Positions 6,875-35,950 of a stretch of 38,123 nt of DNA are shown here, piece after piece. The stretch is from Hyphochytrium catenoides (Eukaryota; Protista; Hyphochytriomycota). How positions within the stretch are numbered: position 1 is the first letter of the stretch; every line of letters starts with the position of its first letter. The stretch lies in the NCBI GenBank assembly GCA_900088475.1, contig FLMG01003580.1, forward strand, positions 1-38,123, given 5' to 3'. A program made the translations under genes and the position numbers. Below the pieces are notes generated by a model that saw only the letters and a list, made by a program, of their open reading frames with translations, was not told the DNA's origin and did not search any database.

Positions 6875-7043
6875 CATAAACAAGTGTACCACTGAGCTAA
6901 CTTAGATACAAAGTTATTTATTCTCCCCCATGAGACAAAAGAAGCCCAGGCGGTGACGATTTCAAGCGTGTGAAGAGGATAGACGAAANNNNNNNNNNNN
7001 NNNNNNNNNNNNNNNNNNNNNNAGAGGGGAAGGCAGACGGGTA

Positions 7044-10276: not shown

Positions 10277-10655
10277 TCTGCTTGACCGATGTGTCGGCGT
10301 CTCACGCAAGTCTGGCTCCGGGGAGGAGTTGGCTTGCACAAACACCATGAGTCACGACAAGCTCTAGTGGAGGCCAGCGATCGAGCATTGAGCTCGGAGC
10401 CTGCCTTCAGCAACAGCGCGGATCCGCAGGCTTACTTTTTNNNNNNNNNNNNNNNNNNNNNNNNNNNNNNNNNNNNNNNNNNNNNNNNNNNNNNNNNNNN
10501 GGATTTGGACTTCCGGATGCTGTTGAAAGGCACGTTGTCAAGCCATCAGAAGGTCAACTTCACGTCCAACGCTGTCCGTCCTTCCATTGCACTTGCCATG
10601 CGAGTGACAAGGAGCAGCATGATGGACAACGCGACCGAAGTGGGCCGATCTGGGT

Positions 10656-20738: not shown

Positions 20739-22481
20739 AGCCTCATCATACAGGGCCTAAGGTCGCTTGACGGTCTCAACATAATTCACTTCTATAGAAG
20801 TACTAGCCAAGGGAAGGCCTTGCTATGGCTTGTGTAACATCTCGTTACTTCTTTTCATCGATACGTTGGGAATGTGTCCATCACCCCAAAGGTCATGTCC
20901 GTTATCAGAGTAATAGTCCACACTCGCCGCTCTTGATGGCTTGTCTTTGCATGTTCTACATAGCGATAGGATGTGCGACTGCCCGCGCTCGCCGCGCGCT
21001 TAGCTGTAATCTCACTTCACAATTTCCAGATGATCTTCTGCACTTCGGCTTTTCTTCGCTTGAGTGTTCTCTCCTAGCCTTCCTCTGTGCCTACCAGTAG
21101 CGTAAGAGAGAGACCAGTCTCGGGAAGCATCCGAGGCTCTAAACGCTACAGGGGTAGCTGAGCGCCTAGCGTACATTGCTGAGTGAAGGAAGTTGTGGAG
21201 GCTGGTGAAGAAACGTGGATGCAAAAGAAGGGAGATAGCCCAACGCAGGCAGAAAAGATGGTAGATGAAGAGACAAAACGTGAAGTGGTGTCTGGCGAAA
21301 CCGGTGAACGGCCAATGACTGTGGCTGAAGGACGGGAGTTGCGTCAGGAAAAAGCTTATTGAGGGAGTTGCTTGGACGATTAGGCAGCATAACGAGGGCC
21401 GAGTGCCGACGTCCCTAGTAGTGAATCTCGACCCAGCATTCAACGACCAGCGACGGCTACCGTGGCCAGGAGGAGTGATAGCTCGAAGGCAAGGCCGTCA
21501 AAACCACTTTTTTATCGAGGGAAAGATCTAAGGAACCCCACGGGATTGGACACTTGGCTCATGAAGATTGAGCGCTACGTCTTTGAAGACTCTGACCCAG
21601 CGAAGATCAGGACAGCTACCTCCTTTCTTACCGAGAATGCAGCAGAATTCTGGCTAGCCAAGAGTAGCGAACTTAAGAGGCAAGAACAAGGACGACCTCA
21701 TTCGCTATCGACTCTCTAAACTATTCCGGAAGGGAAGGGTTGACGAGTACATCGCAGACTTCCGGAGACTTGCGTACCAGGTTGAATATCCGGGGGGGGA
21801 TATTAGGTTTTCCTGGCGAGGTAGAGGATGGGGCTGACCTCGGGCCTCAGTCTCAGATTTGCTCGGTCAGCCTCAGCCTCTGCCGCCTGCCCAGACTTAG
21901 ACACAGCGACAACGGAGAGGGGAGGCACGGCTGACTGCACCTATTCGGCGCAGCAGGAACAGTCAACCGCTACCCGGCATATCAACCTGTGCAGAAGACG
22001 GAAGACACGCAGCTAGAATGGTAGGGCCCAAGCAGGCAGGAGGCTCTCAACTACGCTAAGCACACATACAACCTAATGCTACGACAACCTAATCTTGGGG
22101 GCCAAGAGCCTCCTTCCTCCGCTTGACCCAGCTAGGGGCGGCAAGGAGAGCTCCCAGGCTAGTAATGTCAAGCGCCAGTTGTTCCCCCCAGCCAGAGGCT
22201 TACCATTGATCTGCATGCTCTCTCACGCTCATCCTGGTGAGCAACAGGAAATATCAAGAAAGGTGTAACCCATCATCAGTCATCCAAACACTTGTTTTCC
22301 GGAGCGACCGAGCCAGCCATGCGCGACGTGGCCGCATTTGTGACGTGTCTGTTCCTTGCTGGTCACTTTCAACTTATTACTGACAATTTTAGCCTCATCA
22401 TGCAGGGCCTAAGATCCCTTGACTTGCTCAACATTATTCACTTCTATAGAAGTACTAGCCAAGAGAAGACTGCTATGGCTT
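20739..22481 (+). repeat. ~95 bp direct repeat (20739-20831 and 22391-22481) bracketing the gag remnant
   Basis: AGCCTCATCATACAGGGCCTAAGG...ATTCACTTCTATAGAAGTACTAGCCAAG...TGCTATGGCTTG is present twice with scattered mismatches. Confidence 0.85.
21462..21830 (+). mobile_element. Ty3/gypsy-type retrotransposon gag remnant (frameshifted, no pol seen)
   Basis: PSKPLFYRGKDLRNPTGLDTWLMKIERYVF...AKIRTATSFLTENAAEFW matches the capsid pattern PxxFxG...WLxxxExY...KxxxAxxxLxxxAxxW. After a frameshift, GRVDEYIADFRRLAYQV matches the major-homology-like VxEYxxxFxxL. A possible LTR start TGTAAC lies at 20833; no second LTR or PBS was confirmed. Confidence 0.75.
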
Positions 22482-23082: not shown

Positions 23083-23808
23083 ATGGTCCTCACAGCACGG
23101 ATAGGACGCACAGCCATAGTGGCAGGACTGATGCTGAGCAGCTTGTCCTCTTCTATCGCTCTGGCCTCGCTTGCTACCTCGACAGCCACCGCTGCTGGTG
23201 ATGTTGCCTCTGTGGAGTCTGTCAGCGATCAGATGAGTATGTACGAGGATGAATCTCCTTTTCTGTCAATCAAGTCGGACTTCACGCCCGGCCCAGCAGC
23301 TGCATGGCGGATACTGTTATCCTCGAAACCACTTCTACCATCATCGTCGTCTTCCTCTGATGGTATCGTCGGCGGCTTAGGCCAGCAACAACAAGATCAC
23401 CAGGTGGCGCTGCTCGACGAACAAAACGATGAGCAGCTTGGCGGCAGCCGCAAGCAGATGGAGAGACCGGTAAACCTTATTGCCACCGACTTCCCAAGGG
23501 AACAATCTCCTCCTTCTGAGGAGAAGCCTCACGTTCGGCGTCTTCTGCGATCTCAACCACAAAGGAAAGTGGACTGTTCTCGCAATGGCCAAATCCAGTA
23601 TTGTGAAGAGACCATGGGGTATTTGTCAGCAGGCATTGTCGTGAAAGGGCCTGCTTATAGCCCACCAGGCACGAGATTTTGTCTCCGCAGCGATTCCCAC
23701 CACTATGCTATCAACTATCAAGCATCCTACCGAGTCACCTGCTCCAGTGGATCTCAGGGAACTATCAACTGTTGCACCGCAAAATTCACAATGCCTTACT
23801 CGCGTTGA
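23083..23808 (+). CDS. Secreted cysteine-rich prepropeptide, paralog A (intronless; ORF also open from 23023)
   Basis: The ATG lies in the same TAAYCATGG context as paralogs B and C. Layout: signal-like N-terminus (MVLTARIGRTAIVAGLMLSSLSSSIALASLA), acidic/Ser-rich prodomain with FTPGPAA, junction VRRLLRSQPQRKVDC, C-terminal C-x8-C-x25-C-x19-C-x9-CC. Confidence 0.8.
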   Translation: MVLTARIGRTAIVAGLMLSSLSSSIALASLATSTATAAGDVASVESVSDQMSMYEDESPFLSIKSDFTPGPAAAWRILLSSKPLLPSSSSSSDGIVGGLGQQQQDHQVALLDEQNDEQLGGSRKQMERPVNLIATDFPREQSPPSEEKPHVRRLLRSQPQRKVDCSRNGQIQYCEETMGYLSAGIVVKGPAYSPPGTRFCLRSDSHHYAINYQASYRVTCSSGSQGTINCCTAKFTMPYSR

Positions 23809-24034
23809 GGTTCTCGAGGGTGTACGAACCTTCATGACAAGAAGGAAACGAGTGGAGCTGGCGGCAGCGATAGGTGCAGTCCCTAGAGCTTGTATAGGAA
23901 GAACGGTAGAGTAGTCCAACACATGAGGTCAGGATAGCGCTGGATCAGAGATGAATAGTTAGGTCTGCCGCAGGCTCAATAAGGTCATAGATGTGCTGCT
24001 CTCCTGAGACAGCGCATCCAGCCGACAATAACTT

Positions 24035-24625
24035 CCAGCAGTACGTAGAACCTCCACACACTCCGCCTTCTCGACGGACCCCATTGACCCACAAACAAGC
24101 CCTTGCCCGAAGCAACCGATAGCCCAGCAAGGATCAATAAATAAAAATGATATGACGTCCATAGCGAAGAGCAGACGCGACTCTGTTCATCATGAGCGAA
24201 AGAAGGACAAAGTCCTTTCATTCCTTTGGGCCCAAAATAGCAGCTGCTTTCCCAGTGCAGTCTAACCTCTTTCTCTCCGTCTGGAGAGCTTTCGTCCACG
24301 TGCCAGCGCCCGTTAACCGAGGCACTGGTGGAAGGGTGAGCGCTCGGAAGAAGCAAGGATCACAGGCTGCTTCTTCCACTGGGCCAATTGCTCCACCCGC
24401 CCTGCACCAGAGTACTGGCAGTTAGGATACCAAGACAACTTAGAGCTCTTTCTATAGAAGCATATCAAAGAGGCGATGGGTACTACGAAGTACACTTAAG
24501 GAAAAGGAGCAGAAGTTATCGCCCGACACCTTATCCTTTCCTTTCTTATTTGGCGGTCTCCTTCATACTTTGACGCTTAAACCTTGCCTCCTGTGCCTTT
24601 TGGATGTACCATTCTGCAAGCTTCT
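24035..24625. repeat. Diverged ~600-700 bp duplicated segment, copy 1 (partner at ~35062-35745)
   Basis: Collinear shared blocks include TTCTCGACGGACCCCA, ACGTCCATAGCGAAG, AACCTCTTyCTCTCCGTCT, AAGCAAGGATCAC, TTCTTCCACTG and TTTGGCGGTCTCCT. Confidence 0.85.
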
Positions 24626-24805
24626 GGAGGCAGGACATTTGATACCTTCTTTATTGCAAGGCTTAAGAGTGATGCTATCTCTCTCTCTGTCCCTTTCGGA
24701 CAAACAGCGCCTAAAAGAGATGTCCATATACCTTCCAGCTCCTCAAAGTTCTCTCTCTTCCCAATTCTTGAAAGATACGCGAGAGACAGAGGCGATGGAA
24801 GAGGA

Positions 24806-27800
24806 CTATAGCAGCTCCGGATCACCGAACTCAGCAGCGAAGCGTCCCAACGCCCAGACAGGGAACACATTCCTATAGGAGGTGTAGGTAATCCCGCTGG
24901 TGCGGTTGAACACTCCGCTCACACTCTCCTGAGACCAATCTCCAGTCTTCTCCTGCCTCTGAATAAGAAACCTTGCACCCTTTTTCAGCACCTCTTTCTC
25001 TTCCTCTGTCTTCCCCCATCCACCAGCAAGAAGGCCTAGAAGTGCCCAAGAGGTCTGGACAACTTGGCTTCCCTCCCTGTTGTTCTCGGTGTACTTCTTG
25101 TCAAGGCAAGACAAGAAGCTTTCTCCCCAGCCTCCATCCTCTCTCTGCTTGGAGGCAAGGAAAGCGCAGGCTTTAGAGATAGCACGGGAGCTTTCCCTTT
25201 GCTCTCCGGCAGCCTTTAGGCCCTCGATACCGAACCAGGTGCCGTAAGTGAAGCAGCAGCCCCAGCTGCCGTACCAGCTCCCATCCTTTCGCTGAATGCT
25301 TTGGATGAACTTCTGCCCGTTCTTGATCGCCCTCATTATCTCCTTTTGGCGATGCTCAGGGAATTGCTTTTGGAAGCTCTAAGAGTATTGAAAGAGGGAG
25401 AGAGAGAGAGAGAGAAAGGGCAGAGATAACGGCAAAAGGTGAGATCTGCGACGGATGGAGAAGTGGATGACCACAATGGAGCAGCACAATAAAGAGGAAA
25501 ATTAGAGAGAAAGAAAGAAAGAGAACAGACTTACCACCAACGCAGTCAAGACTGCAGAGGTGCACTCCACATAAGAGTAGTCGATCATGATATCGCCAAA
25601 CACCTCGGAAGGGTTCAGCAGCTCATACCAACGCCATCCTCGCGTGAGTTCGTAGGTTGCCCATCCGCCGTCATCGTTCTGGAAGGAAAGCAGTAGATGC
25701 ACAGAGTCGAAGAGACGCTCGGCGTTGATCTTGTTGGAGATCTTAGGATTCTCCTAGAGAAGGGTGGAAAGGAGGTCAGTCTTAGGTGTAGAGAGCCGCG
25801 TTAGAGACCGCTGAGGGGGATATGCACGGCTGCCAATATTCTAACATCCGACGGGAAGGGATTTAGAGAGGAAAGAGACTGGATCTCAAGGATCTTGAGC
25901 GCTCTATGCCTTCTATCTCCTCCTTTCTCTCCCTTCCTGTCTGGTTTCTTGGCTCTTTGTTTCCCTTACCATTTGCAATAGCACAGCCTTGAGTCCCTCG
26001 GCAGTGCAGTCAGAGATGGGCCAGCCGTGGGCATTGGTGCTGAAAGGCCACCCGCCCTTTGAGATGTGCCTGAACGAGAGAAGAATGAACAGACAGAATA
26101 TCCTTAGAGACTTAGCAATGATTAGGAGCAACAATATATGCTACTCTTTAGGGATTCGGGCAAGATAAGGGAGGAGGAGGGTCCACACCATCGTACCGGA
26201 AATACTTCTCCCTGTCGGGTACATCTTCTCTGATCTGCGTAACATCCACAAAGTCGTGGGCCCTTTGTAGACACTGAGTGAACTCCTCCTGCAATCCCGT
26301 CTCATAGATAGCTTGGATGGCAAAAGCGGTGTCCCAAAGCTACGCCAAGAGAGAGAAAGATGTGAGGATGACGCAGCAGAGTAATCGGGCCGAAGCAAGA
26401 AGCCAAGGAACGGTCTAGCCTTAAGTAAGAGGCTCCGTTCGAAGTTAAAGAAAGGGCAACCCCAGCTTGCAGTGGCCTATCACACTTCCCCCACGGCTCT
26501 GGCTTTGATAAGACCCCACTTCTTCTCTGCCTGTCCGCTTACCTGGCTCCCATTGTACCCTTGCATCTTGACTCCGTCCTCGGCCATCCAAATGTAGTCC
26601 TCGAGCCTCTTGACATGCTTCTTCACCGCCTCTCCTTCAGGGTTTTCCGCCCACACGGCCACGAGGTTTAGCATCTTATTGACAGGCCCAATGTCCACAT
26701 AGTTCGTCTGTTCATCTTCGGCATGGATGTAGTCTATGGCAAAGCGAAGCCCAGCAGAACGTAGGAGGGAGACAGAAGAGGAAAAAGGGGAGCGTTCGTA
26801 GATCGCTAGGATCTCATTAAGAAGACGCATGGGCAGAGAGAGAGAAGCGTAAGCATCGATGTCGCTCACTGGAGCAGTCCTGAAAGTTTGCCAATTGATC
26901 TCCTCATACTTCTCAACGTAAAGTTCTTCTCTTAGTGCCGTAGTCAGTGGACAGAGCGGACGGGTCACTCTCTTTCCATAGATGTAAGACATAGGAAGAT
27001 AGACCATGCGACAGTGACACCAGAGACGGCCAGGATGGAAAGGGAACCAGTACGGAAGCATCCACAGCTCGGGAGGAATAGAGTTTATCCCTCGCCAGTC
27101 ATAAACACCGAGGATCGCCAGCCAGAATTTGGCCCAGGAGGCGGTAGAACCTGCTCCACCATGCTCCTTGATAAAGAGCCGAGCCGTGACGATGTACTCT
27201 TCTTCACTGCTCTCCCCCAACAAGCGCAGAGCCACATAGTTCAGCACCGAGCCAAACATGGTACTTGCACCCTCGATGTGAGTGCCCCAGCCGCCGTCTT
27301 CTTGCTGATGATTGCGCAGATAAGCCACCATTCCGCGCTTTTTGAGCTCGGAGATCTCAACCCCGCATACGAAGCAGGCAATGACGAAACCTGGCAGGAG
27401 GAACATTGGACCTCCGTAGTCTCCAGCCCAGAATCCATCGTCCGTCTGCAGCGTCTGGTAGTAAGCAACACCTTTCCTCGCTGCATCTAGTGCTGTCTTA
27501 GGTCGCGGAGCTTCGGCATTTGGCGCTTCGAAGATGCTCCGAGACTGAGCCCACGTCCTGAAGAGCTTATCACCAGCGTTAGGATTCCTGGAAGGATCAA
27601 AAGTAGAGAAAAGAGAGCGCATGGTTTCCATGTCGAGCAGTCCTTCTTCTCCCTCCGTCCATATCTGTCGTCCAACAGGCTCTCCAGTGAGATTTGGAAG
27701 CTTTTTTCCTGAGAAGGACTTCTCGGTAACTTCGTGAGAACGCTTTCCAATGGCAGGATGGCCGACAACAGAGGGCACAGCGGCAGGTCTGGAGCTCCAT

Positions 27801-28027
27801 TTGGCCAGTCTTGTCGTTGTTTCTCTTGGACCTCCAGGAGAAGAGCGCGGTTCCAGATTCATGAGAATGAGAGGACAAAGCAGAGCGAGAAGGATGGTGG
27901 AGATGAGGATGGCGAGGAAGTGATCGGCGCAAAGGACCGAGAGATAAGCAAATAGATCCTGCAGCATTGTCCGGCAGGTCTCCGAGAAAACGATGAAAGA
28001 GACGGAAAGGAAGATGGCAGCTGCCAT
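24806..28027 (-). CDS. CAS1: Oxidosqualene cyclase, cycloartenol-synthase type, ~839 aa; exons 28027-26543, 26339-26197, 26069-25970, 25753-25535, 25378-24806
   Basis: Motifs present: [38 protein letters not shown]|[15 protein letters not shown] (catalytic DCTAE), QW repeats ([29 protein letters not shown]). Residues equivalent to Arabidopsis CAS1 Y410/H477/I481 are the cycloartenol-type set; lanosterol synthases have T and V at 410 and 481. Confidence 0.95.
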
Positions 28028-28532: not shown

Positions 28533-29777
28533 CAGAGGAGACTCCTATTGATTACTGAACGAGAAGAGGAACAGATCTGATATTGATAACCAAGGTAGGT
28601 GGTTGTTGATTTGTTGATACAACTGTATCGTGGGAGCTGCAATGAGGAGTTGTACATGTGAACTACTACAACGCACAACTGTTTTATGCACTGTCATGGC
28701 TTCGACTCAAGCTCTCTCGCGTTGTTCAGAGCAGACTCTTTATAATATTACGCTGTGTTCTACTGTAGGCAGAACTCATCATCATCAGGCCTCAGAGTAG
28801 TCAAGAGTCATGACGGGGCCAAGGTCCCAAGGCGGCGGGAGAAAACGTGTCAACAACAAGCGCCTTCTTCTGTACTACGCTGTCTGAGTGCATCTGGTGC
28901 TGCTGCTGGCCATTAGCGACTGTCGGCTCTGCCAGTAGGGAACATATGGGAGGAAAGGAGGAAAAGGATAGGCAAGACGGGCTCATACGTTCCCGTACCG
29001 GACCAGTAGACTGGAAGAGTTGCTACAGGGCTGACGTCCTTGCTTAGCAGACACTTTATTGAAGTGAAGGACTATGCAGCAGAGGGGATTACTTGGTCGA
29101 GGAGTGACTGAGAAAGCCTGCCAAGACACGACCGTGGCCTGCCATCAGCTGGTGTCAAGCTCAGGGGGCGCATTGGTTCCTTTTCTGTTCTTGGCTGGTT
29201 GAGATAGGAAAGCTGCGCTCACCCTCTCACGAATTTCCCCAATACTAGTTGGCTATAGCAGAATCTAGGAGTAATATATACTGGCTGGCCATTGCGGAGA
29301 GAGAAGGGGAGCAGGCATGGTAATCCTGATTCTTCTTCTCCTCTTACTGCATCCCCTACTGTAGTTGCAAAAGATTGTTAGTCGTAGCAGTAGGAGGAGG
29401 GTGAAACATAATGCAACACGCTATTATAAAGCTGATAAACCGTGGACCTGAGAAGTAAGAAGTATCATGGCTCTCGAGTGCTAGGGCTCCTACCATTCTA
29501 GTAGAGAGGAAGGCAGCACGAAGGCTGCACCACCAGAGATGATGCTGTCGGCTTGCAGGAGGAGGAGGAGGCGAGAGTAGTAGTGGTTATGCTATGACTG
29601 ATCAACAAAAAAGAACGGTAGTCGCTCCTTCCTCGTCTATTCTTCTTCTAATTCCCCACCATCGTCATACTCACTTCTCTTTTTTCCACCATCGGCAACA
29701 ACGAGCGTTCTCCCATCAACAACCAACACCTGACCGACTGGCGCAAAGCAAAGCTCTACAACCTCCTCCAGCTAACC

Positions 29778-30443
29778 ATGGTCGTTTCAACACTGACAAT
29801 AGTCCTCCGCACAGCCGTATTGGCAGGAATGATGCTATTTAGCTTGTCCCCTTCTTCCGCTCTGCCCGAGAGGACCTCGGCTGGTGTTGTCGCCTTTGCG
29901 GAGTCGGCCAGTGATGAGATGATGCGTATATACCAGGACGATTCTGACTCTCTGACAATAGAATCGGAGTTCACCCCCGGCCCAGCAGCAGAACGGATGC
30001 TTTCCTCCTCCTCAGAACCACTTCTACCATCGTCGTCCTCCTCCTCTGACGGTACGGTAGGAGGCTTGAGCCAGGATTATGGTCGGGAACGGGCGTTGAG
30101 GAACCAACAAGATTATAATGAGCAGCTTGAGGAGGGCAGCGGCGGCCACAATCAGAGGGAGGGAACGGAGGAGGACCTAAGTTTCGCGCTTCAAAAGGAG
30201 CAAACTCTTCCTCCTCAACTATCTAGGAGCCGTCTTCGGCGACTTCAAGCAGGAAGGAAAGTGGACTGTTCTCTTGGTGGCCAAATCAAGTATTGTCGTA
30301 GATATGGTCTCGTGGGCGTGAGATATCATCAGAAGAATTATTGTTACATGCCTCCTAATTACCTTTTCCCTACTAACGTTCTCGCATAGTTCACTGTCAC
30401 CTGCTCAAGCGAGTCCCAGGGTGTTGTCAACTGTTGCAATTAG
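29778..30443 (+). pseudogene. Secreted cysteine-rich prepropeptide, paralog B, with in-frame TAG at 30387-30389 (nonsense allele, readthrough or sequencing error)
   Basis: The prepro region is nearly identical to paralog C. After the TAG the frame continues FTVTCSSESQGVVNCCN followed by TAG TAG (30441-30446), completing C-x8-C-x15-C-x19-C-x9-CC. Confidence 0.75.
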
Positions 30444-31974
30444 TAGAATCTGTGGGGTCTCGATGATGTACTTCTACGAACCTCCATGGCAGAAAGGAAG
30501 AGAATAGAATAGGCAGCAGCGGCAGCTGAAGTGCTTGTAGTATATACCTACCTCTATAGAAAAAAAAATCACAAAGATTGCCGTGTACGTTCCTTGCTCT
30601 TTGAATCGACTGATTTTATCACCTCTGGGAGATGTCTCCCAGTCCTCTCGCGGCTGACCGGATGGAGGAAAGCAAGAGCTCTCACGAAAGCCAGTCACCG
30701 CGTCTGACGCGCCCTTTGCTGTGTAGAGTACTGTCCCCTTCTTCCAGGCGCCGCCTTCCTCCTCTCCTTATCCTCCCTCGACGGCGGCTGATGATGATGA
30801 AGGGGAGCCTGGCGCCGCCGAGTGTCACTCCAGGTTGGCCAAACGCCTTCGTCTTGGCTCCTCCCTCCACCTCGATCAGGGGAGCCTATCCCTGCCTGGC
30901 GCCGCCATGGGCGACGTACAACTAGGGGCTACCGGCCCTTCGTCCTGCGGTTGCTGCTCTCGTCGCCGATGCTGCTGCTTCCCGCACTTTTGTCATTGAC
31001 GTCCTGGAACTCTTTCTCGCTTGCGCAGGAGCTCTTCCACGCCCTAGTCGAGTCTCAAGAAACGGCGGCTCCCAACGAAACTTTCCGTGCAGAATTGCGG
31101 CCAATCCGCGGTGAGCTTCTTGCTTTTCGTAAGCACCTCCACAGCTCAGGCCTCCTCCTCGCGCTCCTCCGTGATGGTCTCTTCACGCCCGCAAAACATA
31201 GTTCTATGACCCTGCACTTCTATTCTACTCCTTTCATGAGTAATAGTAATATAGGAAAAGGAAAAGTCAACAATAAATGCTGCAGTACAGGTACTTCTTC
31301 CTTAGTACTTTTCGGAGTAGGGAGGCAGTCTACTGCTCGCGAATGCTGGGTCCCTTCTGTTAACAGGTCTCAAGTCTCGAGTTCCTGGACCGAGGACGAG
31401 GAAGCATCTTTCTTGCGGGAAACTGTATACAAATACAAGCGATACATCAAAGCGATCATAGCATAGCAGGGTCGTTCTACGATCATCCTCTGAAGAAAGA
31501 AGGAAGGCCGTTTGAAAGCCCGTCCTATGGCTGGTCTGATACCGTTTTGTTATGCAACTGAACCCTTTCCATTCCCTCCCTCGAACTACTCAACAAGGAC
31601 AGCTCCCTGATAACATATCCTTTTGCATCGACTAAGAAATAGTTCTATCTCTGCAGCCTATCACGGCGCGGGCACACGATAGTGACTGATAAGGTCTTTG
31701 GCTGTCGTTAGGATAGCCATCCGAAAGGACTCGGTGAGGGCTGTAAAAAAAATGTTCCTGAAGAGCATTAAGAAAGGTCCAACCCATCATCAGTGATCCA
31801 CACTGGCTTCCTGGAGTGACCGACCCCATGTGTGACAGAGGCGCATGTGTCACTTGCCTGTGTCTCGCTAGTTGGAAGAGGAACGATGGGCTCACCCCCC
31901 TCGAGAACTCTTCGACATCATCATCTGGCCATAGGAGATTGTAGGACGAATAACCACCGGTTGGCTGCTGCAGA

Positions 31975-32006
<32 letters not shown>

Positions 32007-32510
32007 CAGAGAGAGANNNNNNNNNNNNNNNNNNNNNNNNNNNNNNNNNNNNNNNNNNNNNNNNNAGTGGTGAGCAAAGTCATGATCATCCTGATTCTAG
32101 TCCTCTTCCTAGTCGCAGAAGGATTCTACAGGAGGAAGAGGAGGAGGAGGGTGGAACATAATGCAGCAGACTACGAGCTATGAACCTGATAAACCTTGGA
32201 TCTGAAAAATAAATATTGTGCCTCTACTACTGCTACGTAGTGCTCGTACGTACACATTCTAGCAGCGACGAAGGTAGCACGAAGAACGGGCTAACAAAGA
32301 TGATGCTATCGGCTTGCAGGAAGAGGAAAGGGGACAGAAGTAATGCTGCTATCGATTGACCGACACAAGCCCTCCCGTCTTCTTTTGCTTCTTCTGTCCC
32401 ATCTTCACCATGCTCACTTCCCATTTTGCCCCCACCACCAGCAACAACAAGCGTTTGTCCCATCGAGTATTAATTAGCGTTGCCCCGTCTACGGCCTCCT
32501 CCCGCTAATC

Positions 32511-33179
32511 ATGGTCGTCTCAACGCCGACGATAGTACGCACAGCCGTATTGGCAGGAATGATGCTATTTAGCTTGTCCACTCCTTCCGCTTTGGTCGAG
32601 AGTACCACCGCTGGTGCCGTCGCCTCACCGGAGTCCGCCAGTGATGAGATGCGTATATATCCGGACGGCTCTGACTCTCTGACAATAGAATCGGAGTTCA
32701 CGCCCGGCCCGGCAGCAGAACGGATGCTTTCCTCCTCCTCAGAACCACTTCTACCATCGTCGTTGTCATTCTCCTCTGACGGTATGGTAGGAAATTTGAG
32801 CCCATATGGTCGGCAACTGGCGATGACGAATGAACAAGATTATGAGGATGAGCAGCTGGAGGGCAGCAGCAGCCACAATCAGAGGGAGCGAACGGAGGAT
32901 GACCTAACTTCCGCGCTTGGAAAGGAGCAAACTCTTCCTCCTCAACTACCCCGGAGCCGTCTTCGGCGACTTCAAGCAGGAAGGAAAGTGGACTGTTCTC
33001 TTGAGGGCAAAGCGCGCTTTTGTAAAGGAAATGGCTACGATGGTGTAAGGAATGACAGGTATTGTGTCGTACCTCCTTACTCCAAACTCCCTGGGATCTA
33101 CCTGGAAGCAAAGTTCCAAGTCACCTGTCAAAGTGGATCCCGGGGTACTATCACCTGTTGCCATACAGGTGCACTTTGA
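32511..33179 (+). CDS. Secreted cysteine-rich prepropeptide, paralog C (222 aa, intronless)
   Basis: Layout: signal-like MVVSTPTIVRTAVLAGMMLFSLSTPSA, acidic prodomain, junction RSRLRRLQAGRKVDC, C-terminal C-x8-C-x13-C-x20-C-x9-CC. Confidence 0.85.
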   Translation: MVVSTPTIVRTAVLAGMMLFSLSTPSALVESTTAGAVASPESASDEMRIYPDGSDSLTIESEFTPGPAAERMLSSSSEPLLPSSLSFSSDGMVGNLSPYGRQLAMTNEQDYEDEQLEGSSSHNQRERTEDDLTSALGKEQTLPPQLPRSRLRRLQAGRKVDCSLEGKARFCKGNGYDGVRNDRYCVVPPYSKLPGIYLEAKFQVTCQSGSRGTITCCHTGAL

Positions 33180-35061
33180 GGTCTCTGATGGTGTACGATT
33201 CTCCATGACAGGAAGGAAGAGACTACTAGAGTAGGCAGCAGCGGTGGCTGAAGCACCATTTAGCTAGTCGTTCTTTCCTATGTTTTTCTACTATAATCAC
33301 ACTCCGCCAAGTAAAAAAATATTAGAAATGGACCGTGACGACGGCCGTCTTGAAGTCAAGAAGGCGATGGATCAGTGATGATAAAGATGAGATGGCAGAG
33401 TTCGTTGAAGGCTCTTCCTTCTCGTAGTGCAAATAGCAGAATGAGATTCATGAAGATTATGCGCTCGAGCAATGCTCAATAGACTAATGATGCTCAGGGA
33501 CTGTAGAGCCCATGTATGTAAAGCTTATGAAGTTGATGTGCAAGAGAGAAACACTCTAAGAAAGGGAGATATCAGAGAGTGTTAGAAAATGACTGAACGG
33601 TCACCAAGGGATCCATCGTCTCAGACAAGAGAATCGGCAAACAAATTGGTGGCCAGAAGAAGGAAAGGGAAGAAGTAATGAAAGTCGGAAAGAGATAGTT
33701 CATGAAGCAAGAAGAGAACAAATTTCTAGGAGAAAAAATAGTGAAAGGAGAAAGTAGGACAAAGAATCAAGAGAAGGATATTCCTTGCCATAGAAACCCA
33801 AAAGAACAAGAGATCTCAACAGATAGCTCTGCTGCAGCAGGCTCACGAATGAACGAGTTGAGAGGACAGTTGGCCACTAGTAGAGGCATGTCAGCAGATG
33901 ACGGAGGCCAAGAAGTGCTGGATTGCTGATGTCTGTGTGACAAATTTCTAACCTGTGAAGACCTCTGGACCTTCTTGAGCCTATCCTCCTCCTCCAGTTT
34001 TCCATGTAGGGCCGGCCAACACTCGTAATGGAAAAGTAGACGAGTAAAGCCTAGCAGCTCTTTTTTGAAAGCGCCATTTTCTTCTGTGCACTCTCTCTTT
34101 GACCTGTAGGTGGTTTTCATGAGCCAACAACTTCCAGACTTGTTTTGACTCTTGTTGCTTAACCTTTCTTTTCATTCCTAAGAAGAGTAACTTCTTCATC
34201 GTCTTCTCCATGGTTCTTTCTCTTGTTATGTTGTTTGTTGTCTTCTTCTGCTATTGCACCACCGATGAGTTCCATGATTATGATCAAAAAGATAGATGAG
34301 TGAGTGGTGGTGGTCAACAATCGAGTAGTGGAAGTTGGATAGCAACACCACCTGAAGAAGAATCTTGTCATCATACGTACTTCTCTCGTCGTCTTCATTA
34401 GGTGAGCCTTAATAACCAGTCGTCTATTCGCCGATCTTGCTATCCATCATCCAGCAAACGGCGCGGCCACTGTGGGTGGTGACTGCAAGGCACCACTCTA
34501 CCCCTGACTTACCTATCACCCATCACCGATCGAAGGCTATGCGTGCCAACTATTCTACTGGTCCTGCTGCGGTAACTTCTCCTTACCTACGCTGATCTAC
34601 ATGTATCCGTCATCATCATAAGACTGAGAAGCGGCTTCTCAAAGCTGTGAATGGAACGCAGAGAGGCATCGCATGGAGCACAGGCTGGCCGTTCTCCTTC
34701 TGTTATGAAGGGCGCCAGTCCTATTATGCTGGAGGGCTTGTAAGGGCTCCGATGCTGCTGTGTGGTGTTCATTCAAACAACACGGTCATAACTGAGAAGA
34801 AGTGATCAGGTTCTTCTCTCCTTGACGTGCTTCTTCTCATTCTCCTTCTTGTGGTGGAGTCACCGAGGGCCGCTATGCAATCTTCAGATGTAAATCTATA
34901 AGGCAAGGCGACTGCCGCTGTGAGGTACAGAAGGCTATGCATTGTGACTTCTCAACCTTCAGAGCCAACCATCAGCGATACGAAGGTAGAGAGCGCGCGC
35001 TGTTGACTCATGGTCATAGATGGACTGTGAGACAGTGTAGCATGCAGTGAGCAACAGCCTT

Positions 35062-35745
35062 AGCAGTACAAAAGGCCTCCAGGAACTCTTTCTCGACGGA
35101 CCCCACTACTGCCCCACAAACCCTGGTACGAACAGGCACAGGCTAGTGACCTATAAATAACATTATTACGTCCATAGCGAAGGGTGAAGGACAGATGACG
35201 CCAGCCTGTCCATGAGTGCATGAGCAAGAGAGGACACAATCCTTCCCCTGATTCCCCTTTGGTGCCCTCAGACAGCAAGTGCTTCCCCAGTGGTGCTCAA
35301 CCTCTTCCTCTCCGTCTATAGAGCTGTCAACAAAGTGTCAGAGCTTGTGAATCCGCGCACTGGTTGAAGGGTGAAGCTTGGAATAAGCAAGGATCACTGG
35401 TTTCTTCTTCCACTGCGCTAAATGCTTTGCCCGCCTACACCCAAGTACTAACAGTTAGTATAAGAATAACCAGGACCGGTCGCAATCTTCTAGGCGAGCG
35501 AACAAGCCAGAGCTAAGGGCACAAGAGCTGTAAAGAGAGAGCCTAATTAGAGGCGATGGGGCTCCAAGGAAGTACACTGGGGGAAATGTTAGAGTAGGTG
35601 ATGACAAACGAAGGGTGCAGAAAGGGCAGAAGTTCTCTCCCTGCACCTCACCTTTTCTCTTCTGCTTTGGCGGTCTCCTCTATCAATTTGTGGCGCTTAA
35701 GGTTTGCCTCGTGTGCCTTTCGTATGTGCCACTCCCTAAGCTTCT
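35062..35745. repeat. Diverged duplicated segment, copy 2 (partner at ~24035-24625)
   Basis: Same collinear blocks as copy 1, with indels; no intact ORF spans either copy. Confidence 0.85.
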
Positions 35746-35950
35746 GACGTTTCTCTTCAGCTCGCATCAGCTATTTAACAGCGATGAACATGATTAACCA
35801 TAAGTGAAACAGCGAAAGAGCGAGCAAATGCACTTTTACAGGAGAAAGCAGACATGACAGAATGACAGAAAGAGCGCGGACTGAGCGAGAGAGAGGAAGA
35901 AGATCTCTTCATATCTTCTTCTCTTCCCTCGCTCTGGTCGATTCTCATTT

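Follow-up and report, generated by a model that had tools for sequence, protein, structure and literature searches.

A gene-conversion patch between tandem paralogs probably accounts for the abrupt conservation boundary in a predicted secreted-peptide gene family of Hyphochytrium catenoides

The human Gγ- and Aγ-globin genes are the classic case of non-allelic gene conversion, the converted 5′ part ending abruptly inside the gene. We describe a sharp edge between two tandem genes in a window of 38,123 nucleotides (nt) of Hyphochytrium catenoides DNA (contig FLMG01003580.1, positions 1 to 38,123, assembly GCA_900088475.1), in which three intronless open reading frames (ORFs) on the + strand, the paralogs A (23083–23808), B (29778–30443) and C (32511–33179), have one common architecture. 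Their products are predicted to be secreted prepropeptides, and two other described systems resemble them in design. With the conotoxins and the spider ‘Shiva’ superfamily (PMC4029134) they have in common a signal peptide, an acidic propeptide, a basic (Arg-Arg-type) junction site and, at the C-terminus, a small disulfide-rich peptide in which a fixed Cys framework holds variable loops, as well as intronless, tandemly duplicated genes. With the oomycete PcF/SCR74 proteins (PF09461; PMC7327169), which are small, cysteine-rich effectors of the apoplast, they have in common that they are secreted (in our case by prediction), that six cysteines lie in a domain of ~70 residues with a highly variable internal region, that the genes form small clusters with pseudogenes, and that the lineages are related, the oomycetes being sister to the hyphochytrids. 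The original prediction for this locus held that B and C switch from near-identity to hypervariability at the start of the mature domain, and attributed the switch to diversifying (arms-race) selection or to cassette-like exchange of mature domains. The boundary is indeed a sharp one, and we read the evidence below as pointing mainly to an ordinary cause, a conversion patch between tandem paralogs.

On a codon-aware alignment, B and C share perfect runs of 42 nt (B 29808–29849), 53 nt (B 29985–30037) and 51 nt (B 30226–30276), and the two identical stretches that had first drawn attention to this pair both lie within the 42-nt and 51-nt runs. Similarity collapses directly after the residues KVDCSL, just as had been claimed: identity drops from 100% in the 30-nt window at 30246–30275 to 50% in that at 30276–30305, and a single-breakpoint maximum chi-square scan of the coding sequence peaks at B 30277 with a value of 64, which was reached in 0 of 2000 permutations (differing fraction 0.118 to the left of this point, 0.405 to the right). 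To call the signal and prodomain nearly identical was, however, an overstatement, as identity over the whole of this prepro part is 88%, perfect runs being interspersed with patches at 73–80%. The differences inside it fall in clusters, two perfect runs of at least 51 nt having a probability of 0.0006 by chance, and such clustering suggests conversion that was patchy or happened more than once. To the right of the boundary ~45% of sites differ at once over a variable stretch (B 30276–30386, 37 codons including Cys2 and Cys3; C 33003–33110, 36 codons; nucleotide identity 54–55%), in which the two indels, of 6 nt and 3 nt, keep the frame, as predicted, and the Cys codons are conserved in the DNA. 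The claim that similarity returns in the 3′ flank is true in part: B and C are 69–71% identical in the C-terminal tail (VTC...CC; B 30390–30440, C 33114–33176) and 75–83% identical in the first ~90 nt of the 3′ flank (B 30444–30531, C 33180–33253; alignable in A also, at ~23809–23870), after which the similarity is lost. In those ~90 nt after the stop codon, 46 of the 83 gap-free columns are identical in A, B and C, a better conservation than that of the coding variable stretch, and the segment may be a 3′ untranslated region element.

The history of the boundary becomes clearer when the comparison is extended beyond the ORF and to the third copy. The duplicated unit shared by B and C, of ~1.4 kb, is larger than the gene (B 29167–30531, C 31840–33253), and a two-breakpoint scan, which covered its B 29318–30531 portion, gave B 29740–30275 as the best segment (differing fraction 0.12 inside versus 0.33 outside; 0 of 200 permutations). 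This low-divergence block of ~540 bp, on the + strand like the genes and in our reading a conversion tract, runs from position −38 relative to the ATG to the end of the KVDCSL codons or the codon that follows them, and its C side, with coordinates derived from the B alignment, is 32473–33002. Upstream of it B and C retain non-coding homology (B 29167–29739, C 31840–32472) of 61–70% identity, differing at 0.30–0.39 of sites and with indels that do not preserve a frame. Within the block, B–C identity is 0.88, against 0.70 for A–B and 0.67 for A–C. Outside it, the three pairs are much alike: 0.61 (B–C), 0.61 (A–B) and 0.58 (A–C) upstream; 0.55, 0.52 and 0.53 in the variable stretch (A 23584–23724, 47 codons, with a Cys2–Cys3 spacing unlike that of B and C); and 0.71, 0.71 and 0.75 in the tail, where the three copies are mutually equidistant. 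Sites that group B with C against A, relative to the sum of those that group A with B or A with C, stand at 116:45 in the block and at 53:95 outside it (Fisher p = 2e-10), the latter being the 1:2 ratio expected of a star tree, and in a distal upstream element B and C (67%) are no closer than A and C (74%). B and C are therefore sisters only within a patch of ~540 bp that is bounded on both sides. It is this bounding on both sides, together with the discordance with A, that argues for interlocus gene conversion of the prepro block rather than for a swap of mature domains or for a recent pair with a runaway mature domain. Of the features that one looks for in such conversion, those found here are close paralogs in the same orientation, a bounded tract of high identity that includes silent sites, and a third copy whose relationships disagree inside and outside the tract.

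Substitution rates across the boundary tell the same story. They were obtained as Nei-Gojobori counts for B versus C, with B read through its in-frame stop codon (see below) as X and the stop column excluded from all rate counts. In the prepro part (163 codons) the synonymous rate (dS) is 0.17 and the nonsynonymous rate (dN) 0.12, giving a dN/dS of 0.68, while in the variable stretch (35 codons) they are 0.62 and 0.74, giving 1.18; dS thus rises ~fourfold and dN ~sixfold across the boundary with dN/dS nearly unchanged, and a joint rise of this kind points to parts that differ in age or mutation input rather than in selection. Per synonymous site, B and C show 0.15 synonymous differences in the prepro part and, in the variable stretch, 0.42 (Fisher p = 0.0026); the prepro value is also below the 0.31 of the upstream non-coding flank (p = 0.0004), from which the synonymous sites of the variable stretch do not differ (p = 0.20). 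For the variable stretch the ratio of the proportions of nonsynonymous and synonymous differences (pN/pS) is 1.11 for B–C, with a bootstrap 95% confidence interval of 0.71–1.86, and 1.02–1.11 in comparisons with A. We thus found no statistical evidence for positive selection in the variable stretch, and the diversifying selection that had been proposed is not demonstrated by these data. The codon-based comparison of dN/dS and dS put forward with that proposal returned a high dS in the variable stretch, as conversion of the prepro part would produce, but no dN/dS significantly above 1; the outcome closely matches the scenario that had been set against it, a recent conversion of the 5′ part with saturation of dS, in that dS is near saturation, and departs from it in that dN/dS is ~1 rather than low. 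The GC content at third codon positions (GC3), 0.53 in the block and 0.41–0.49 in the variable stretch, gave no clear signal of GC-biased conversion in what are few data.

With a pN/pS of ~1.0–1.1, against 0.6–0.76 for the prepro part in comparisons with A, the inter-cysteine loops appear to be the least constrained part of the gene, evolving almost neutrally. In all three pairs divergence is greatest in the variable stretch, whose nucleotide identity is 0.55 against 0.446 ± 0.054 in shuffled controls (0.70 against 0.43 for the upstream flank), and so high a divergence could reflect either the lack of constraint there combined with some regulatory constraint in the flanks, or positively selected positions in the loops. 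In a conotoxin-like regime, B and C would be recent duplicates of the age of the prepro block and the mature domain would have diverged fast by diversifying selection, perhaps with a locally raised mutation rate. Such a regime would account for a divergence that in every pair is higher in the variable stretch than in either non-coding flank, 5′ or 3′, and for a pN/pS of 1.0–1.1 around cysteines, a Gly and a Pro-Pro that stay fixed, and a conserved signal and processing site joined to a variable toxin are what the precursors of spider and cone-snail toxins look like (PMC4029134). We nevertheless regard it as unlikely, since recent duplicates should differ by ~12% in the upstream non-coding flank, which is 30–39% diverged; dS climbs together with dN; the confidence interval of pN/pS includes 1; and outside the block the branches of B and C are no shorter than that of A. 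Nor are the signal and pro-region conserved in the family as they are in conotoxin-type genes, conservation being confined to B–C: against A, pN is 0.25 for the signal and 0.31–0.33 for the pro-region, and whole-protein identity is 48%. The three genes further differ from conotoxins and ‘Shiva’ toxins in showing no similarity of sequence or fold to them, in a pro-region of ~125 residues rather than ~20, in numbering only three copies, and in their rates, dS rising along with dN and loop pN/pS being not above 1 within its interval.

A gene-conversion patch between old tandem copies is, we think, the probable explanation of the abrupt switch. A, B and C, arrayed in tandem on the same strand, would be old copies of a gene restricted to its lineage, and long after their divergence non-allelic conversion between B and C, whose starts are ~2.73 kb from each other (A, upstream of both, is 6.7 kb from B), would have overwritten a patch of ~540 bp, although several short conversions may have acted instead of one. 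Homology is poor at either end of the tract, where a leader full of indels (5′) or the diverged loops (3′) begin, and we infer that the tract ended where the partners had become too diverged to pair, heteroduplex extension being expected to fail in such places. The abrupt switch would then be the edge of a homogenised block seen against an old background of divergence, and B would have acquired its in-frame stop later. The likeness to globin-type interlocus conversion extends to copies that are close together and point the same way, to a well-delimited block whose high identity includes silent sites, to edges that are sharp against an older background, and to a block tree at odds with that of the flanks; unlike the globin case, the genes here are orphan protist genes for a predicted secreted peptide, the 3′ edge falls at a domain boundary, and the pattern is known from one genome.

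Several points weigh against this explanation. It is drawn from three sequences of one genome, from which neither the direction nor the number of conversion events can be resolved. The variable stretch is near saturation, which makes equidistance there a weak argument when taken alone, and the case rests mainly on the upstream flank and the 51-nt tail. The variable stretch (0.45 differing) is also somewhat more diverged than the upstream flank (0.30–0.39), and some extra acceleration in the loops is possible. Upstream of the genes, B and C can be aligned without a break over a greater length than they can with A, which would fit a somewhat younger split of B and C. Finally, constraint on synonymous sites in the prepro part is possible as a source of its low dS, although a GC3 of ~0.53 shows no sign of strong codon bias.

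The 3′ edge of the block also bears on the proposed exchange of cassettes, by which the mature domain of B or C would have been replaced from a diverged donor through recombination at conserved sequence of the junction. Such sequence is present: all three copies have the same 18-nt junction word, which in B and C is part of the 51-nt perfect run whose end coincides exactly with the switch. We consider this exchange very unlikely all the same. The upstream flank is diverged too, so that the piece with the odd history is the internal prepro block, bounded on both sides, and not the 3′ half of the gene; and a donor is wanting, as the 61-Mb genome assembly contains exactly three copies of the family and we found in it no further copy or fragment of the unit, of a junction-word cassette or of a Cys-domain cassette, silent or otherwise (the junction word itself gave 82 matches, against 83 for a reversed control). 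Of the interpretation first offered for this locus there remains a recombinational mosaic at the boundary, with the loops as the apparently least constrained part of the gene; neither of its two alternatives holds as written. The junction word (A 23562–23579, B 30254–30271, C 32981–32998) is identical at silent sites also, in an A sequence that is otherwise 30–35% diverged, and this points to constraint at the nucleotide level or to a micro-conversion that involved A as well.

Paralog B contains an in-frame TAG (30387–30389, + strand) where A and C have sense codons. The claim that all cysteines are kept is thus true of the DNA, in which the Cys codons are conserved, but not of the open frame of B, which retains three of six, the stop removing Cys4–Cys6. 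Beyond the TAG the reading frame goes on for 17 more codons, three of them for Cys, up to the normal end of the family, B has no frameshift, and the tail past the stop has a dN/dS of 0.22 versus A (17 codons only). As there are no frameshifts, no excess of B changes in the variable stretch and so low a ratio in the tail, the stop looks recent; B is probably either a null allele or a gene that became a pseudogene not long ago, and the TAG may be confined to one allele or be a base-call error, the H. catenoides genome being diploid with ~2.75% single-nucleotide polymorphisms (PMC5795050). A stop that costs three cysteines makes it natural to ask whether B is simply dead, its mature domain having drifted ever since, and we find this most improbable as the origin of the switch. 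B and C have branches of equal length in the variable stretch (16 versus 18 sites in the codon alignment, 19 versus 19 in the DNA alignment), A and C, a comparison without B, also have a pN/pS of ~1, B lacks frameshifts and has the constrained tail just described, and decay would not leave the prepro part spared.

We also weighed whether the switch is an artefact, either because the variable stretch is a short intron or because B and C are haplotypes misjoined across an assembly gap, and judged this extremely improbable. Splice-like sites do occur at matching places, GTGAGA...TACTAAC...TAG in B (72 nt) and GTAAGG...AAG in C (69 nt), both lengths being multiples of three. Splicing would, however, drop Cys3 and leave five cysteines; 120 codons over the three copies are open and in frame (chance ~0.003 for the absence of stops times 0.11 for the frame); Cys2, Cys3 and the Pro-Pro are conserved; the sites are absent from A; and the introns of the neighbouring oxidosqualene cyclase gene are 125–215 nt long. 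The short-intron reading was rejected on the grounds of cysteine parity, the conserved open frame, the sites missing in A and the neighbouring intron lengths. That the region is coding follows from ORF indels that are all multiples of three (those in the flanks are not), from a prepro pN/pS versus A of 0.62–0.76 with confidence intervals below 1, and from a variable stretch that is open and in frame in all copies.

A misjoin is the kind of error to be considered in a heterozygous diploid genome assembled from short reads (PMC5795050), and there is a gap in the B–C spacer (32017–32065), directly after a GA microsatellite (31966–32016). It begins 1574 nt past the final stop of B and ends 446 nt ahead of the ATG of C, and no reading frame of the family crosses it. 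The adjacent B segments 29167–29304 and 29306–29345 match C 31840–31980 and 32069–32107, which flank the gap, so that homology is collinear across it; in the same way an upstream element of A (22253–22363) matches the pre-gap side and the proximal upstream sequence of A the post-gap side. We take it from this collinearity that the join is sound and that the gap hides only expansion of the GA microsatellite; it affects the exact B–C spacing only, and not the comparison of the genes. The haplotig misjoin was rejected because of this collinearity and because the sequence downstream of B is unlike that downstream of C. At least four of the six gaps in the window adjoin GA/CT microsatellites (225–279, 619–621, 1557–1571 and 32017–32065; the other two are 6989–7022 and 10441–10500), and such microsatellites are very abundant in the window, where they give rise to many spurious Ser-Leu ORFs.

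As for the genes themselves, A is an intact intronless ORF of 241 residues, counted from the second ATG, whose N-terminus resembles a signal peptide and is followed by an acidic Ser-rich pro-region, a basic motif and an 80-residue domain with six cysteines; C is likewise intact and intronless (222 residues, with a 64-residue six-Cys domain); and B has the architecture of A, with the open frame that stops early and the normal family end reached in frame. The N-terminal hydrophobic core of the proteins spans residues 10–23 (mean hydropathy ~1.9–2.0), and the pro-region of ~125 residues is Ser-rich and acidic, with 18–23 Asp and Glu against 8–9 Lys and Arg. Directly before the Cys domain, as read from the sequence, lies a basic motif, RSRLRR...GRK in B (30225–30257, + strand; C counterpart 32952–32984) and VRR...QRK, directly before KVDC, in A, which is a putative kexin/furin-type processing site. 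The C-terminal domain opens with KVDC and has the spacing C-x8-C-x13 to 22-C-x19 to 20-C-x9-CC, the six Cys codons, one Gly and one Pro-Pro being fixed amid variable loops. Secretion, proteolytic processing and disulfide bonding are all predicted from these features. As a working model, the precursor would be cleaved at the basic motif and would release a peptide of 64–80 residues with three disulfides, for antagonism or signalling.

The surrounding 38-kb window is eukaryotic in character (GC content 50%, plentiful GA microsatellites, GT-AG introns). Between A and B, on the − strand, lies an oxidosqualene cyclase gene, cycloartenol-synthase-like (24806–27856), with at least four GT-AG introns; its best database matches, which come from stramenopiles and MMETSP transcriptomes, are only ~50% identical. 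A and C share non-coding homology beyond the gene (70–76% identity) at 22253–22363 versus 31767–31872, 24068–24429 versus 35090–35462 and 24503–24626 versus 35621–35746; as this lies on both sides of the gene, the original duplication was larger than the ~1.4-kb unit of B and C. The downstream spacer of C includes ~1.8 kb without a counterpart in A. Upstream of A there is a 78-nt direct repeat, its two copies 90% identical and 1.65 kb apart (20739–20816 and 22391–22468).

Our searches for homologs outside this genome were negative throughout. Pfam gave no match to the full proteins (E-values up to 1) or to the Cys domains alone (E-values up to 10), PF09461 included; a word-seeded phmmer search of 5.8 billion proteins found no homolog of C, nor any when the alignment of the mature domains was queried separately; a profile hidden Markov model (HMMER) search of 1.84 billion representatives found no homolog, its one marginal match being to the signal-peptide part only; and neither the ESM Atlas nor an exact-sequence look-up gave a match. 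A scan of metagenomes with the 18-nt junction word returned 17 loci, all of them chance matches; the best of these (L007:7277-7321), a near-match of 31 nt, is intergenic on a bacterial contig and was dismissed as coincidence and not a relative. For the Cys domain of C, AlphaFold gave a weak model (predicted local distance difference test score 63, predicted template modelling score 0.45), and a Foldseek search of the Protein Data Bank with this weak model gave nothing at E ≤ 0.001. The family is thus a lineage-restricted orphan, found only in this fungus-like stramenopile and with no homolog detectable in the databases searched. Unlike PcF/SCR74 proteins, A, B and C do not match PF09461 at the permissive threshold given above and do have a long pro-region, and their host is probably a saprotroph and no plant pathogen; positive selection, moreover, has been demonstrated for SCR74 (PMC7327169), in contrast to the present family. 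Because the test of homology fails for both, we place the family neither with the venom prepropeptides nor with PcF/SCR74.

For the interpretation of such loci, this case means that hypervariability resembling the product of an arms race can arise from conversion of a neighbouring segment, and that a third paralog together with non-coding flanks is enough to tell the two apart. There is no sign of a new mechanism. Selection for distinct mature peptides might nonetheless hold the edge of conversion at the junction, in what is one event only, and one may go further and propose that the genes belong to a stramenopile family, so far undescribed, whose secreted peptides are processed and rich in disulfides (antimicrobial, toxin or signal), and in which conversion homogenises the half concerned with export and processing while selection for distinct mature peptides halts it at the junction, a proposal that we regard as doubtful. 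If true, it would be a protist counterpart of the animal-venom design of constant prepro part and hypervariable toxin. As an orphan six-Cys family, A, B and C may be of modest interest for protist secretomes or for peptide discovery.

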